Assembly: GCA_038496445.1 (NCBI GenBank)
Contig: JALMLS010000516.1
Coordinates: 310,001 to 374,000, forward strand
Reading direction: 5' to 3'
DNA: 64,000 nucleotides
Origin: Trichosphaerium sp. ATCC 40318
Taxonomy: Eukaryota; Protista; Tubulinea
The position numbers and the translations under genes were made by a program. Position 1 is the stretch's first letter, and each line of letters opens with the position of its first letter. Shown one piece after another: positions 4,976-62,471 of this stretch. The notes beneath the pieces are model-generated. The model saw nothing but the letters and a program-made list of their open reading frames with translations, made no database searches and was not told where the DNA came from.

Positions 4976-6256
4976 TTACTCTTCATCAAAGTATTGCCGA
5001 CGAACCCATGGCTCATAGGAAAGCATGAGATCAACATGATATTTTACCTCTGAATTGATATATTTCTTGTTACTTTTAAGCTTGGTCATGAGAGAAGAAC
5101 TTAAAGCTTCATCTACATTTGGATAAACGTCATCACCACAGCAATACCAATCACACATTTTGGATGACTTGTTTTCAAGAATGGCATTGATAATAAGCGC
5201 TACACTTGCGTCTGATAGAATAGGTTGTCCGAGCTCGCTGACATGAATATCGAGCGCACAAAGGTGAGTATTGCAACGCAATCCACGTGATAAGTGTTGA
5301 CCAGCGGCATTCAACTGCAGACCGTTAACTCCTGGCAGTTTTAGTACCTTGAGGGACGGATAATTTGCAGCAATTAAGTCACCAATAGCCTTCCATCCGG
5401 TGGCAGATAATGTAACATATCGTAAACAAAGTTCTTTTAACTTGAAGTTCGATAGAGAAAGCAACGCGCCAAGAAATTCGTCAACATTCGTGCAGCTATG
5501 AATACAGAGAGTCTCAAGTGCATTGTTGGTTTCAAGTGCTTCAGCTATACCTTTTATACTTGCTACCCCTTCAGCTCCAAAGTCGAGTTTACGAATTACA
5601 CAATAAGGGTCTGCGATGAGTCGTTGGATTTCCTTAATATCAGTGCTGGACTCTCCGACATTTTCGAAAGAAAGGCATCTGACCTTGTCAGAAAATTCCA
5701 GTATAGCATCAACAATTGTCTTCACATGATCAGTTACAAGAGTATCAACAATACCTATGTTGAATATATTTGGGTCATTGTTGTCCTTAATAAAGTTGGC
5801 AACAATTGTTGCGTTGCTGCTTGGATTTTCAAAGTCGTTCAATCCAAAACATTTTTCAACACTGTAGACGTCAAAGTCAAGTAACGATTCTTGTTCTCCT
5901 TCTTTGTTTTCTTCAATTTCTATTCCTTCTAATTCATAGCTATATTGTTCCATAAAGTCCTTGCTGTTCTGTTTATTGTACTCGGTTTCCCACACTTGCC
6001 ATTTTCTCATTTTTTTCCACAAGGCCAATTTTGTTTTTGTTTCGTCACTGGAAAATCGTGGATCAAGCGAGACGTTGTAGTCTTCTTTGCATTTAAGAGA
6101 CCATATAAATGATGCTGATACAGCTGATTTGGTCATGTGAGAACATTGGAGTAGTTGGATAATGCTACAACCCTTTATTTCTTGTGCTATAATCTGAAGG
6201 AGATTCTCGTCAATGGATGGTGTGTTAGTTGTAACTGCGGTCATTTTTTTCTTCAT
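4976..6256 (-). CDS. Intronless F-box-like plus RNI-type leucine-rich repeat protein
   Basis: 426-aa ORF; N-terminal IDENLLQIIAQEI...LLQCSHMTK...IWSLKC fits the F-box pattern; repeats such as IAEALETNNALETLCI and LSRGLRCNTHLCALDI. Confidence 0.75.
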   Translation of the reverse strand: MKKKMTAVTTNTPSIDENLLQIIAQEIKGCSIIQLLQCSHMTKSAVSASFIWSLKCKEDYNVSLDPRFSSDETKTKLALWKKMRKWQVWETEYNKQNSKDFMEQYSYELEGIEIEENKEGEQESLLDFDVYSVEKCFGLNDFENPSSNATIVANFIKDNNDPNIFNIGIVDTLVTDHVKTIVDAILEFSDKVRCLSFENVGESSTDIKEIQRLIADPYCVIRKLDFGAEGVASIKGIAEALETNNALETLCIHSCTNVDEFLGALLSLSNFKLKELCLRYVTLSATGWKAIGDLIAANYPSLKVLKLPGVNGLQLNAAGQHLSRGLRCNTHLCALDIHVSELGQPILSDASVALIINAILENKSSKMCDWYCCGDDVYPNVDEALSSSLMTKLKSNKKYINSEVKYHVDLMLSYEPWVRRQYFDEE

Positions 6257-48633: not shown

Positions 48634-49547
48634 GCAAATAATGTAACAAAATAAAATGAACAATGTACCCTTAAAATCCGTTTGCTGAAGTTACAAAGGC
48701 AGTTGATGTTTGCGATTAAATATTGTAACAGGAAGGTTATCCTATCAAGAATTGCATTGCTTAGAACACTAGTTAAGATTCACTATCAGAGTGTGCTTAA
48801 GTTGGTACAAACAATTGTGAAGCTCCGTTTCTCTTTGAAACTCATATGATTCTGCCGGCTATCGCGCAATAGTAACAACCACATACCAAAGCACTTTCCT
48901 TACTCTACAAATTATTCACTACGTGTTGTGATGACTCCACGCAGTGAAAGCTAGTATCAGTTTGCAGTATTTTATTTTTTGGTAAAATTTCGGCGAAATT
49001 TCTAAACGTTGTGCAGTCTAATAAGACGTGGTAAATTGTGGTTCGTTTACACATATCAAAGTTTGAAAGCGTTTGCAAGGGTATTTTTTTTTACAGTGAT
49101 TATTTCTGCTCTTAATTCCTTTACTTGCTTATTGTTAAGTTGCTCTTATTTTAGTGGTAGCTATTTGTTTATACTTTGCTTTTATTTCTTAGGTTGTGCT
49201 ACAGGTTGACATGTATTACTTCACACGTTTTTTTTCTCTTTTTCATTTGTCCTTTATTGTCCGAGTGCGTCCGTAGCCCCAGTACTTTAACTACGCAATA
49301 GAACATAAAATTCTGCAGCCGCCAAACGTAGTTGAGAATTTGGTGGAAATTGAGGTGTTATTTGAAAATGCTCTAACCTATTTTGTTGAACCGGTAATAG
49401 TATTTACCAGCTAGAATTTGTACGTTCGATGTTGTTAAAGGTGTTCGCAAAAAGGCAACTCACAATTATTTTCGACTAATTTCGTTCGGACTTGGGCTTG
49501 CTTAACGCCGTCAACATCAAAACCACCGTACCATTAATACAACAACA

Positions 49548-51725
49548 ATGGCAGAGAGAAATAACATGTTTGGCGAGTTAACAAGCTTCAATAAAGAGGG
49601 CTTAAACCCAACGAACACTGTAGTACACCACAACACATTTATAAACGAAGCAGGCGTAACCAGTCCAATAACACGCGGTCATGCCGATTTTGAAGATAGC
49701 ATAGAGTACTTTGACGATCCAGTAGACTTTAGAGCAAAGGTAAGCGCTCAAAGACGCTAAAATACGGCCGTTTACAATTTTAGATAAAAAAACTGGCAAA
49801 GTTAGTTAAAGAGAGCAAACACTTGGTGGTATACACTGGCGCTGGTATCTCAACCGCAGCGTCACTACCTGGTACAAATCTACAAAAAACACGTTGAAAA
49901 ACTTCCGCGTTAATCCCTGAACACCCACTTTCAACATCAAACAGCGTTGACATGATTTTTAGATTACCGTGGTCCTCAAGGAGTATGGACAATGAAAGAC
50001 AAAGGTTTAGAAGCACCAAAAAGCATTTCACTCGAAGCAGCACGCCCAACAGTACGCCAAAAACCCTTCCAAAAGCAATCGCTAACAGAACGTAAAGTAT
50101 ACTCACATGGCACTTGCTTCACTTGCCAAGGCTGGCGTATTAAAAGCAGTAGTTACAACAAATATCGATGGACTACATCTGAGAAGCGGTATAGACAAAG
50201 AAGCTGTACTAGAACTTCACGGAAACGCACACACTGATAGTACGACATGAGGCATTGGCGACAGTGCACTAACTAGTTTTTTTCAGCTGGAAGCGTCATC
50301 AACTTCGGTCAAAGCTTGCCAAAAGAAACTTATGATAAGGCAGATAAACACTCCATGAAGTCTGACCTTGCTTTGGTACTTGGTACGTACACTCTGCCTT
50401 TTTTGATTTTGCAGGCGCACGGCGGTTCGTTGTCAGTACTAATGGCCTTCCAAGGTACAAGTTTACGTGTCAAACCAGCTTGTATGTTGCCTCAAAACTC
50501 ATATGAATACAACAACGGAAATATGGTTATTGTAAACCTTCAAAAGACGCCTTTCGATGAAAAAGCAGCTGCTTGTATTCGAGTAAGTATTCAATTATAC
50601 ACTTGCAACCATATATACCTAACCGAAATTGTAGGGTTCAGTCGATGATGTTATGCAGTTGCTCATGCAAGAGCTCTCAATGGACGTAGATATGACTCTA
50701 CCAGATGGTACAAAGTTACCTGAAAGAACGCTACCGGATATTGATAGCATCCACAACGAAAAACGTAAAAACGTTGCAAAGGTTCGTGAGCATAGTGTAC
50801 GTAATTGTAGTTAACTCTATATGTCTAGCAAGTAAAGACACTTAAAAAAAAGCAAGGAGACCTGATAGTAGGTACTGTAAACAACAAGAAACGTGGATGT
50901 TTCTTCGTTGAGAATCAACGGTTTGATACACAAACCAAGAAGGTGCTGGATAAGCACAACAAAAGCGATGCACTATACGTTGCTAACTGTGCCAATGGCG
51001 ATTTTACAATTTCATCAACATGCGCCAAGCTTATCATCGGTACGGAAATTACTTAGCCTTACCCTCGCTTACGCCTACACAGAGCGATGTGAGAACTGTA
51101 GTTTTACTGTTACAGGCAAAGTTATTACAGCTATTGGAGAAGTCATAGACACAACGAACTGTACCCTACATATTTGCGTGCCAATGTATACATTAACAAT
51201 CGACAAGAGTGAGGTAGGTTTCTTGTATTTGTTGCAAGGCCAGTCTAGATACTAATCATGATATTTAAGAATATTACTGTGGCTTGGAGAACACCACACC
51301 TCCTAAAGAATATCTACACTAATAGATACAAAGCTGTACAAATTGTTTACCACAAGAGCTTGCCTGCCTACAAAGTGCCAGAAGTGTCAGAGGTATGCTG
51401 TTTTTCTTTGAGTCAAGTTTATCTTACAGTACTTAAGGATAATATTACCGAGACGTATATCACTCATATTGTTGCCAACGAGCTTCAAACAGAGTTGGTT
51501 ATACGCGAAGGTATTGGATATGCAACCACTGTACGTGAAAAGAAAATAGCAGACGATAAACTCGAGAAGAACTTAAAGATCATGGAGAAGGCCTTCAGGG
51601 CTATGGTAAATATTAAAAAAAAAGAAGCAGTAGCTAGCGGCAATTCTGATCCTAATTTTCTCAATTTTTAAATAGTGACTCCAAAAAGACGTAAGAGGGA
51701 CGACCCAACAGCATACTTGCACTGA
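49548..51725 (+). CDS. Class IV (SIRT6/7-like) sirtuin with N-terminal thymosin/WH2-like motif and C-terminal CAP-C/CARP-like domain; zinc subdomain absent
   Basis: [70 protein letters not shown]; beta-helix-like LYVANC, KLIIERCENC, LTIDKS; last exon uncertain (stop at 51671 or about 51725). Confidence 0.88.
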
Positions 51726-51998
51726 AGAAGCGCTAATGCTAATCCTCAAAAATTCTTATTATTTGTAAATAAATGGCCCACCGACACTTTTGAAAATTGA
51801 CAATTGTTCAAGTTAACTGCCGCTCTCAACACTTTTTTAACAGTCGCCCTTCGCCAGGAATAAAGTAACCACAGGCGAATGATTTACACTGCTTAGGACA
51901 ACAGTGGCATTTTAAGGGGAGCCTGCGAATTTGGAGATAAGTTAAGCAACCATTGATTTTAAGGTCAATTGTGAAATTTAACTATTTAGAATACAACA

Positions 51999-52899
51999 AT
52001 GCGTGCAGCTCTAGTTCTTTGCCTTGTAGCCTTTACATTTCTTTATTACGTCGACGCAAGGGTTTTATTTGACTTTACCACCAGAGACATCAATTCCAGA
52101 AGATGGTTTGAGGTCAGTGACACCGTCCGCTCTGTAGGTACGCTTACCGTTCGTACACCAATTCGATGAATGATTACAAGACCGCTAGCTCTAATACTTT
52201 GCGCTAGGAATGTCTTTCGCCACGATTGGAACTCAGACAGCGCAAATGTTTAAAAGAGCGATATTTTTTGCCCTATTAAATCCCCAACCAAGTACGTTTG
52301 ACCAAAACTGTTCTTCGTTCAAAAGCTGTAAAAAGTACATAACACAAACTAGAACGGTCAGGTCTTTCTTTACTTTCTCAAGTTTTATTTTCAGAAATCA
52401 CGTGGAGTGATCTTTTTTTACTTCCTTGGCTTTTTTTGAATAAAAACTCGAACAAAATTTATTTATTTTGGTGATAGATGGTGCTGCTTTTGCGAGTAGA
52501 CAACGTAATGTCAGATGGAATCTAAAGTCTTACACTCATTTGAAATTAAATATCCGAGCTCAAGGAAATAGCAGTCGATTCTCCATTGTCTTATTCTCGA
52601 AGAACCAAGAGGATGAATATCAACAATTTTTCTTATTGGACGGTGACCAGTTCACAGACGTCCTATTGCCTTTTGAAGACTTTGTAGCGTTTAGAAGAGG
52701 TACAACACGAGCTCTTGAAATTCATTTTTCTAAATTGTTGAAAGGCGTGGTTATTCCTGATGCAGATCCTATTGACACTAAACGTCTAAGAACCTTCGGT
52801 TTCCGAGTTGCTGGTGGCGTCTTCTTTGAGCCAGAAGAGAGACAATCCGGTCCTTCTTCACTAGAAATCAACACTGTGGAAGCTGTAACACTCCCATAA
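51999..52899 (+). CDS. CIA30 (NDUFAF1-like) domain protein with signal peptide
   Basis: MRAALVLCLVAFTFLYYVDA signal peptide; LFDF, WFEVSDTVRSVGMS, NGAAFAS, LPFEDFVAFRRG, QSGPSSLEI. Confidence 0.8.
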
Positions 52900-52984
52900 A
52901 CGATTGTGTAGTGGAAATAAACAGAATTCAAAACCCGTATTCATTCATAAGTCAGCCGTTTACTTAACTCAACTTAAAAACCAC

Positions 52985-54388
52985 ATGGGAAACGCTGCAG
53001 GACGAACGTTAACTGCCAAAACCACTGCAAATGAGGTAGCTATTCACCACAAGGCAAATTTAAAGGGTAAAAAAGTGGTAGTGACAGGTACAAATTATTT
53101 TACCTCACTTGTCATTATCCTACCTTAAAATACCTACTCAGGCGCTAATGGTGGGATTGGTATGTATTCACGGTGTTTTGAAGCGTATTCATCGTCGTAG
53201 GATACCAAACAGCTCGAACGCTTGCCAAAAATGGCGCAGACACTATATTAGCATGTAGAAACGCCGATCGGGCGTCAAAAGCAGTTAATAGTATTAAGGA
53301 AGAGCTAAAACGTGACGGTATCGATAGCGCTGTAGAGTACAAGCAGGTACGCCATCGACGTGTATTCTCAACAGTTAAATCCATCCAAGCTTGACCTTTC
53401 ATCCTTGCAATCTGTGCGCGATTTTGCAAGCAATTTGGATGTGTCAAAAATTGACATCCTGATACTTAACGCTGGTCAGGATAGCCACTGTTTTAAGGAT
53501 CTAAACCTATACTAGCTTGCCTGTACTCAGATAAGAAGGAAACATCAGAAGATGGGTTTGAGAAGCTTATTGGCGTCAATCACTTTGGGCACTTGTAAAA
53601 AAAACTAGCAAGCTAGTTTTTGATACTTACTTTCTTGTAGTTTGTTAACTCACCTCTTGCTTCCTGAATTGAAAGCTTCAGAATCTTCACGTGTTGTAGT
53701 GGTATCTTCTGAGGCATACAAGTGGGGTGATTGTACGTATCACGTTTTTCAATCTGTTTCCGTTTAACATACTCAGTACAGCTGGACGACATAAACTATG
53801 ACAAGAGATCATACCCAGTACGAGAAACCAATCTTACAGGTATTAACAATACTCTGTGTAGCCTTTAAGAGCGTATGCAAGTAGTAAGTTGGCCAATATA
53901 TTCTTTATGAGTAAGTCAAAAAAGCCCATTTCATCTCTAATAAAGCAAAGCCGAATTGAATACGAGACTACAACAGCAAGGTCATAAGATCACTGTAAAT
54001 GCTGTTCACCCTGGTAAATGAAAAAATAAGTGCCAGGATTGATCACTTTCTTAGGTGCTGTCTGGAGCGATGGACTCGACAAAGTAATTACTTCTTGGGG
54101 CACTTTCACTAGGATTTTTGAGCCAGCATTTAAAACTACCGAACAAGTACATCCACAATGAACAACACGATTCTAACACGAAACCTCAAGGGAGCGGCAA
54201 CATCTGTACATGTTGCTTGCAGTCCAGAGTTAGAGGGTGTTGGCGGAAAGTATTTTAATGATTGCAACGAGCAAGAAATGCTAAAATTGGCTAAAAACCC
54301 AGAGCTAGCTAGTAAACTCTTTGACTTTAGTTTGAAAGCTGTTGGACTTGACGAAAATGGAGTACCAAAGAAAAATAAAAATAACTGA
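52985..54388 (+). CDS. Short-chain dehydrogenase/reductase (RDH12/WWOX-like), probable N-myristoylation
   Basis: VVTGANGGIG, LDLSSLQSV, GVNHFGHFLLT, VVVVSS, YASSKLAN, AVHPG, EQGAATS, GKYFNDC. Confidence 0.93.
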
Positions 54389-60647: not shown

Positions 60648-62471
60648 TTAGTAGTACTCTAGCAGCATGTCAAAAGAGGCTTTGAATGCAACTAATATTG
60701 TAGGACTATTAGTGTTTGCTGACGGAATATCTGGAAAGACTGAGGCGTCGATAACACGTAATCCATCAATGCCTAATATTACGTTACAAAAAAGTTACTT
60801 TTAGCAAACTGAGCCGTACCCATTACGCGAAGGTTCGTGTCCACAACTGCAAGTGGATCAGATGGTATACCCATTTTACACGTGCCAGTAGGGTGTGATA
60901 ATGAAGCGGAGAAGTTAACGATGAAGTTCTTGAAGAGGTTGTAAGCATAAAAACTTGATTGTTGTAAAAATATAATGTAAAAATATAATGTACCTCTATA
61001 TCCGCATCTGTCGCTGTAAATGGTAAAAATAGAGGGAAAACAGGCACTCCCAAATCTACAGCATTCTTGTACATATTGAGCGCATATCTGGTGCACATTA
61101 TAGCCTTGTCAAGGTCTTGTCTAGCCAACATAAACTGAGGATCAATAAAAGCGTTCTCTAGTGGATCGAGAGATGCAAGAGTGACGTTTCCTCTACCCTC
61201 AGGTCTCAATAACCCAACAATGGTCGCTCTCAGAGACGCCAAGAACTCGCAACTTGGTCTACCTGAAGTTTCAGGTCCGAAAACAAAGAAAGTAGGTGGC
61301 TGGGTATTTGTTATTTCAGGCTCTGGTGGATCTGGACGAAGGTATCGCAAAAAAATGAGAGGATGATCTTGAAGATTCTGACCAACGCCAGGGAGGTCCA
61401 AGACAACTGGGATGCCCATATCGGTGAGGTGCTGTGCAGGTCCAATACCAGACAACATCAAGAGTTGAGGTGTTTTGAATGTACCAGCAGACACAATAAC
61501 TTCCGCGTTCGCATCAATTGTGAATGTCTTGTTCCTTCGGATAGAAAATACTTCAACACCAGTAACACGTGATCCATCAGGAGAAATGATGAGTTTAGTG
61601 ACAAGGTGGTTCAGCATCACTTCCAAGTTGCGAGGTCGAGCACCAACCAAAGGTCGGACAAATGTATCGTATGTCGTCTCCCTTACAAGGTACTCGTCGC
61701 CTTGGTCAGGAGGGAATACGAGTTGCTCCATGGAAGAGATACCATACTGATCGCCTGAGTTGTATCCGGCAGAGTTAAAAGGAAATCCAGCGGCGGTTGC
61801 GGCTTGCACCATTTGATCAAAAAATGGTACGTTTTCTGGAAGGGTGTATACTCCCATTTTCCTTTCTGTAAAGTGACGCCAAAGTCCTAGTCTATTCCAA
61901 GACCATCTCGAATCGCCAAGGTGATTAGCTAATAAATCCCAATCTTCCCTATTTCCCCAGAGATGAGCCATTTGATTGTGTGTGTTGCATCCACCCGCTA
62001 TTTTTGCTCTTGGTATGAAAATCTCGCGGTTGGCAAGTCCTGGTTGAGGTACAGTATCGTACTCCCACTCCATGAAACTAAACTCTGGACTCCTAAACAA
62101 GCTTATCAGTAAAAAGCACAAAAAAAAAAAAAAGAACTTTAATTTATGGCGACAACATTTGTAAATTTCACGTGCCTTTGAACGAACACAGAGCCATTTC
62201 GAGCATCCCATATCGGTACTTCAGAATCGTGACCTCCTGCTTCGATTAACAAGACAGTTTTGCCTCTGAGCTTGGAAAGCTGTGATGCTACGATAGAACC
62301 CGCTGTACCGCTTCCAACGACAATAAAGTCATAATCTAATAAAGAGTTAACCTTTTTTAATTTTTCCTTTGCCCAAAATAAATAGGTAAGCTTACTTGTT
62401 CGAGATACTTTTGTTTCGGCAAATAGAGCCAAGCACGCGATTATTAGAACAAGCACGTGACCAAAATTCAT
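60648..62471 (-). CDS. Secreted GMC oxidoreductase (choline dehydrogenase/glucose oxidase family)
   Basis: Signal peptide; [62 protein letters not shown]. Confidence 0.93.

Follow-up and report, generated by a model that had tools for sequence, protein, structure and literature searches.

Two new families of class IV sirtuins were defined by Gold and Sinclair in 2022 (Mol Biol Evol, PMC9486876). The name SIR8 was given there to class IV sirtuins of sponges and cnidarians that carry a Pfam CAP_C domain, and six species were entered in Table S1: Amphimedon queenslandica (XP_011406188.1) together with representatives of Acropora, Actinia, Orbicella, Pocillopora and Stylophora (PMC9486876). The Amphimedon SIR8 protein was modelled by the same authors, who called its role unclear. 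A specific motif of ~9 aa and a clade of its own in the sirtuin tree mark the SIR8 family in that paper. Together with a second class IV family, SIR8 was lost by most bilaterians. In the literature searched, no paper besides that of Gold and Sinclair was found to link sirtuins with CAP_C. The fusion of a sirtuin with a CAP_C-type domain is not new, since this architecture has already been published.

For CAP1, the CARP homodimer has been shown to sandwich two ADP-actins (Kotila et al. 2018, PMC5951797). The binding of ADP-actin was abolished in the K365/N367/D372 and Y418/F447 mutants and weakened in the K347/Y351/Y353, D446/E449 and L339/Q399/D446 mutants, and the free tail of CAP, EIAG, was required for nucleotide exchange (PMC5951797). 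As for the sirtuins, zinc coordination is regarded as essential to their activity, which is abolished when this coordination is disrupted (PMC7272460). In ThsA, the SIR2 domain lacks the zinc insertion and works as an NADase (PMC7272460).

A gene encoding both a sirtuin and a CARP-like domain was located in the window, by which the whole 64-kb stretch of DNA that was analysed is meant. All coordinates below are positions of the window, and all features lie on the + strand. It was concluded that the gene is probably a SIR8-type class IV sirtuin, in which a SIRT6/7-like core is joined to a CARP beta-helix on one 12-exon transcript and a partner would be recruited by the CARP part. Both domains that define SIR8, the class IV core and the CAP_C-type domain, were present on a single transcript, the assignment being one by domain content.

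The coding region of 505 aa (49548..51678) was obtained from a splice model and from RNA contigs of X1, X2, X6 and X7. Three frames were read and joined at GT..AG sites, which resulted in an open reading frame of 11 coding exons spanning 49548-51605. Exons 1-4 were placed at 49548-49739, 49784-49871, 49963-50051 and 50098-50239, exons 5-8 at 50287-50382, 50455-50582, 50635-50781 and 50829-51039, and exons 9-11 at 51083-51213, 51270-51392 and 51438-51605. All 11 introns were short (43-91 nt) and of the GT..AG type, and the GC content was about 38%. The 5'UTR (49514..49547) was delimited by a loose template-switch-oligo end of the X6 contig at 49514, and the ATG at 49548 was the first ATG downstream of this mRNA 5' end (~49514). 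According to the RNA, the last (eleventh) intron occupied 51606-51675, so that the last exon opened with the TGA at 51676-51678 and the protein terminated in ...AFRAM. Exon 12 (51676..51790), as supported by the RNA contigs and by an AATAAA signal at 51768-51773, consisted of the stop codon and the 3'UTR; the X2 and X7 contigs ended at 51781 and 51774, respectively. When the model protein was searched against the 64-kb window by tblastn, no paralogue was found.

An earlier reading of this locus from the sequence only had proposed a frame running from the ATG at 49548 through canonical introns, from a sirtuin core into beta-helix-like repeats. Both the splice model and the RNA bore out this course, and the peptides quoted in that reading were present as written. 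Its end coordinate of 51725 had to be corrected, as the basic tail proposed there was not read in frame beyond the last junction seen in the RNA and belonged to the 3'UTR.

All 11 junctions were present in public RNA assemblies (contigs of X1, X2, X6 and X7). The whole spliced message was contained in one contig each of X1 (1629 nt) and X6 (1580 nt), the latter originating from another study and bearing another organism label than X1; the contigs of X2 and X7 were shorter and repeated individual junctions. Three runs belonging to two studies bridged the junction between the sirtuin half and the C-terminal half (50781|50829), and its shorter flank measured no less than 49 nt. The two halves could still be regarded as two adjacent genes that an erroneous gene model, read-through or a chimeric contig had fused, given the general point that a contig lying over two genes does not alone prove one transcript. 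Against this, the open frame ran unbroken through the 47-nt intron between the halves, neither a stop nor a start signal was found between them, the junction recurred as described, and a like architecture has been published for six species. A chimeric or read-through transcript was rejected in view of the continuous frame together with spliced contigs from two studies, and an artefact of any of these kinds is scarcely credible. Hence, the check for separate transcripts failed to refute the single transcript that had been assumed for both halves, and this transcript, in which a CAP/cofactor-C-type domain comes after the sirtuin core, matched the published SIR8 architecture.

Further, the RNA contigs were compared with the window. 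Eight coding differences were recorded, of which three fell in the sirtuin half and the other five in the C-terminal half; all eight were synonymous. About one quarter to one third of random coding changes are expected to be synonymous, which served as the yardstick for constraint. Such a result would be very improbable without purifying selection, and therefore both halves are functional protein sequence. Both halves of the fusion are under purifying selection.

The sirtuin half contained a class IV sirtuin Rossmann core (aa ~52-265, 49701..50694), as indicated by Pfam SIR2 and PDB matches. Exon 4 matched Pfam SIR2 with E=1.7e-8. Its best PDB matches were SIRT6 (41 bits) and SIRT7 (35 bits), and archaeal and bacterial Sir2 proteins and the other classes reached no more than 31.6 bits; the protein was therefore placed in class IV. 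Exon 6 likewise aligned to sirtuins. The core retained GAGIS (49838-49852), DYRG, N-x-D (within TTNID, 50155-50169), HGN with the catalytic His (His164, 50218-50226), GTSL and NLQKTPFD, the last corresponding to NLQxTxxD. In the QNxD motif the Asn and Asp were kept, and a Thr aligned with the Gln of SQNVD in SIRT6.

The zinc-ribbon module was absent from this core. In the alignment to T. maritima Sir2 (chain 1yc5), the match to exon 4 ended at residue 119 and that to exon 5 began at residue 159; about six residues (AHTDTG) at the exon 4/5 junction (50227..50300) stood for residues 120-158, which follow the HG motif and precede the FGE loop. Intron 4 was only 47 nt long and was spliced out in three runs, so the exon 4/5 junction was confirmed by RNA. 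No CxxC motif was found in the sirtuin half, which contained just two scattered cysteines. The loss of the zinc module makes canonical deacylase activity doubtful: we consider canonical peptide deacylation by the fusion protein unlikely, whereas NAD binding or another NAD-consuming reaction is plausible.

It might be argued from these losses that the sirtuin half has lost catalysis and serves as a scaffold or NAD sensor, possibly nuclear, with a structural or regulatory role exerted through a CARP dimer and a basic linker. The deletion of the zinc ribbon, the change from Gln to Thr in QNxD and the abolition of sirtuin activity by the loss of zinc coordination (PMC7272460) would all agree with such a role. 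So would the basic linker between the two domains (50761..50852), in which a KRK-x9-KKK stretch (aa 288-302) fits the pattern of a bipartite nuclear-localisation signal, as judged from its residues. The catalytic His and nearly all of the NAD-contact motifs were, however, retained, and the synonymous-only variation covered the core as well, which fits retained NAD chemistry, although it also fits NAD binding alone. A dead sirtuin half was accordingly rated as rather unlikely, and the reading of the gene as a SIR8-type sirtuin with some form of NAD chemistry or binding was preferred.

The C-terminal half was built of rungs of 18-20 residues with a Cys/Asn ladder and started with VENQ (aa 321), a start that we take to be a CAP-like motif. 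Using Atlas clusters of language-model features, the best named clusters for exon 9 were CAP_C/TBCC (0.90, 186 shared features), which is above the 170 shared features that mark same-family matches, and the top named clusters for exon 8 were again CAP_C/TBCC (0.87, 163-166 shared features). Two separate exons thus matched one small clan, which would be hard to obtain by chance, and a CARP-type domain was accepted for this reason. With considerable confidence, the C-terminal ~160 aa may be described as a predicted CARP-type (CAP_C/TBCC) beta-helix, that is, a right-handed beta-helix of the C-CAP/cofactor C-like kind at aa ~317-474 (50895..51512). The proposal of a CAP C-terminal or CARP-like beta-helix after the sirtuin core was supported by these matches of exons 8 and 9. 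The domain was followed by a Lys/Glu-rich C-terminal extension of 31 aa (51513..51605), which, from its composition, is probably helical.

Other searches with the C-terminal half returned less. No CAP_C or TBCC match was given by Pfam at E up to 10 with each exon singly and with two longer stop-free pieces, a weak negative, since each exon covers between a quarter and a third of the ~157 residues of the domain; among all exons and the two longer pieces, SIR2 alone was recovered. Sub-threshold Pfam matches to Polyoma_coat and Peptidase_M13 were taken as noise. The phmmer search of the PDB with exons 8 and 9 listed no CAP chain, the scans of metagenomes with exons 8 and 11 gave no matches, and three bacterial adhesin-type matches of exon 8 in a representative library searched by phmmer were judged spurious. 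No homologues were returned for exons 10-11 or for exon 1 in searches limited to a window of protein lengths, a blank that carries no weight.

Since the top Atlas clusters of both exons mixed TBCC with CAP_C and did not tell the two branches apart, and one of the best was 98% TBCC, the beta-helix could act as a member of the TBCC/RP2 branch, binding tubulin or an Arf-like GTPase and directing the sirtuin to it. This is very unlikely: the VENQ start is CAP-like, and no arginine-finger rung (QQxR) such as RP2/TBCC proteins have was seen in the sequence. Moreover, SIR8 was reported with Pfam CAP_C and not with TBCC (Gold and Sinclair, PMC9486876).

The N-terminal part of exon 1 had been described as a beta-thymosin or WH2 module on the strength of a 15-mer at aa 10-24 (49575..49619). 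An ungapped alignment to thymosin does exist, with 6/15 identities and a BLOSUM62 score of 29. The hydrophobic residues F8, L11 and F14 (i, i+3, i+6), followed by L19 and T22 (L-x-x-T), matched the thymosin spacing. Both lysines of LKKT were replaced, the motif reading LNPT, and with them the basic core was lost. When the whole protein was shuffled, the score had a P of ~0.013; in shuffles of exon 1 it was exceeded in 0.03% of cases. The six frames of the window contain 57,360 stop-free 15-mers, of which two non-coding ones scored 28, so the resemblance stood close to chance level. A short-motif match of this kind would often be met by a reader scanning 64 kb.

The module itself was not supported by the other tests of exon 1. 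The proposed profile check for Thymosin and WH2 gave no Pfam match even at E=10, the phmmer search of the PDB gave no match and hence no thymosin or WH2 chain, and the Atlas features yielded unspecific neighbours only (~100 shared features). A single-sequence AF2 prediction showed no helix, with low confidence (pLDDT 60), and counts as weak evidence. As a tentative rival reading, suggested by SIRT6 and plant SRT1, the 15-mer may be part of the N-terminal arm found a few residues from the start of class IV sirtuins. We concluded that the thymosin-like 15-mer is most likely either a chance resemblance or part of this arm, and that a working WH2 in the fusion protein is improbable.

The actin-contact residues of CAP1 were then mapped onto the CARP domain. 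The mapping was made by eye, and is thus weak and manual, with VENQ, a pair of ladder cysteines spaced by 19 residues in either protein and a shared VPE as anchors. The numbering of the mouse CAP1 sequence used reproduced every residue identity in PMC5951797. By this mapping, the residues K347, Y351, Y353, K365, N367 and D372 of CAP1 corresponded to S340, Y344, A346, T358, A360 and E365, and the residues L339, Q399, Y418, D446, F447 and E449 to K332, H394, A413, S438, L439 and A441, respectively. Only 1/12 of the mutated residues was identical (Y351 = Y344) and 2/12 were conservative changes. The equivalent of the CAP tail was not terminal, as 31 more residues came after it. Within the limits of a manual alignment, the single identity and the tail that is not free argue against a simply conserved actin interface of the CAP type.

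These results bear on a model developed from the sequence-only reading of the locus, according to which the WH2 peptide and the CARP domain jointly grip an actin monomer, as CAP/Srv2 does, while the sirtuin strips acyl groups from actin lysines, for example those of the lysine-acetylated actin bound by CAP. A CARP-like domain is indeed present, and the 15-mer keeps the hydrophobic and L-x-x-T spacing of thymosin. The background is documented in the literature too: CAP and lysine-acetylated actin form a complex that inhibits INF2, which is attractive, yet not evidence for the fusion protein. On the other side stood the absence of Thymosin/WH2 profile, PDB and Atlas signals in exon 1, the loss of both basic residues of LKKT with non-coding 15-mers scoring within one point, and the low-confidence AF2 prediction without a helix. 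In addition, only Y351 of the 12 contact residues was kept by the by-eye mapping, with K365/N367/D372 replaced by T/A/E, the CAP tail was not terminal, and the zinc module on which sirtuin activity depends was absent. The model in this complete form was therefore regarded as improbable.

Another working model was preferred. It was proposed that the CARP domain, which in CAP makes up an intertwined homodimer, would likewise serve here for dimerisation and for binding a partner, and that it would bring a partner protein to the NAD-binding site, which would have lost most of the usual small domain that binds acyl-lysine. In CAP the two subunits of the dimer exchange their final strand, and the matching last strand of the fusion protein looks conserved; because of this beta-strand, dimerisation would be the most transferable of the CAP properties. 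The candidate chemistry would be deacylation aided by the fused domain, NAD cleavage or ADP-ribosylation, or NAD sensing only. A CARP-mediated dimer bringing a partner to the NAD-binding site is, by analogy with CAP, the most likely arrangement.

As for the partner, G-actin may tentatively be named as the leading candidate, and it is unproven because the actin-contact residues of CAP1 were mostly replaced. An actin-directed deacylase would be possible, with standard deacylase chemistry doubtful given the loss of the zinc module. One more specific arrangement may be mentioned as a speculation with little probability, namely that in this zinc-less class IV sirtuin a CARP dimer and a degenerate WH2-like peptide replace the small domain and hold G-actin, for example in its lysine-acetylated form, at the NAD site. 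If this were true, the protein would be a dedicated actin deacylase or ADP-ribosylase that couples NAD status to actin dynamics.

The gene described here is an RNA-verified model in which both halves are selected despite the loss of a zinc module thought to be essential. It thus provides a test case for two questions: whether a CARP domain serves as the target recogniser, for actin or for another protein, and what chemistry is left to a eukaryotic sirtuin without zinc.

Among the known systems, ThsA of Thoeris and like bacterial zinc-less SIR2 proteins share with the fusion protein a Rossmann core, the catalytic Asn and His and the missing zinc insertion. They are distant prokaryotic defence NADases, whereas the fusion protein is a eukaryotic class IV sirtuin with a secondary loss of the module. 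With SIRT6 and SIRT7 the fusion protein has in common GAGIS, PD(F/Y)RGPxGVWT, PTxTHMAL, NxDGLH, ELHGN, GTSL and NLQxT. It differs from them by the lack of the Cys4 zinc ribbon, by Thr in place of the Gln of QNxD, by ~30 additional residues in the N-terminal arm, and by a CARP domain where they have a disordered basic C-terminus.

[quoted passage not shown] However, the free EIAG tail of CAP corresponds to an internal segment in the fusion protein, followed by the 31-aa extension, which has no counterpart in CAP. Unlike CAP/Srv2, the fusion protein is also devoid of polyproline regions, and its candidate WH2 lies ~300 residues away from the CARP domain, beyond the sirtuin.

The closest likeness is to SIR8. 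In the published table CAP_C is placed 'upstream' of SIR2, whereas the CAP_C-type domain of the fusion protein is C-terminal. Two SIR8 sequences in the supplementary alignment (PMC9486876) retain the region of the zinc module that is missing here, which makes the present gene an atypical one. What it shares with SIR8 is the combination itself, a class IV sirtuin core and a CAP_C-type domain within one protein.

At the exon 4/5 junction of the sirtuin-CARP gene (window 50227-50300), the whole Cys4 zinc-ribbon module of the sirtuin core was found to be gone, with approximately 6 residues standing in place of approximately 39. A second departure was observed in the QNxD motif of the core, where the Gln of SIRT6 was replaced by Thr. 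Despite the zinc-ribbon loss and this substitution, the coding differences between the window and the RNA contigs were synonymous throughout the gene (8 of 8).

The linker that joins the sirtuin core to the CARP domain contained a KRK-x9-KKK arrangement (window 50761-50852), which matched the classical bipartite nuclear-localisation pattern. Because of this fit, the sirtuin-CARP protein may be nuclear, as SIRT6/7 are.

The last intron of the gene was 70 nt long, and with its removal the final exon opened directly with the stop codon, TGA (window 51606-51678). If this intron were kept in the mRNA, the reading frame would run on for 22 further codons before reaching a TAA at 51672-51674. Introns 5 (50383-50454, 72 nt) and 10 (51393-51437, 45 nt) were both of a length divisible by three and contained no in-frame stop; their retention would add 24 and 15 residues, respectively, rather than truncate the protein. 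Forms retaining intron 5 or intron 10 were not seen among the RNA contigs.

Further features were recorded elsewhere in the window. A neighbouring gene with a CIA30 domain (51999-53130, + strand, Pfam E=8.8e-13) began about 220 nt past the polyadenylation signal of the sirtuin-CARP gene, also on the + strand, and its first exon was signal-peptide-like. On the - strand, a 462-codon open exon at 60826-62211 encoded a GMC oxidoreductase N-terminal domain (Pfam E=2e-30); a look-up of this exact protein found no record of it. Also on the - strand, a 426-codon open reading frame with an ATG start occupied positions 4979-6256, for which the Pfam search returned no match.

The domain order was compared with that of SIR8, the class IV sirtuins with Pfam CAP_C named by Gold and Sinclair (2022; PMC9486876). 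For each of the six SIR8 proteins, Table S1 of that work listed the position of CAP_C relative to SIR2 as "upstream", whereas the RNA-verified gene described here carried its CAP_C-type domain at the C-terminus. It was proposed that either the label in the table is a loose one, or the order of the domains varies among the members of SIR8.
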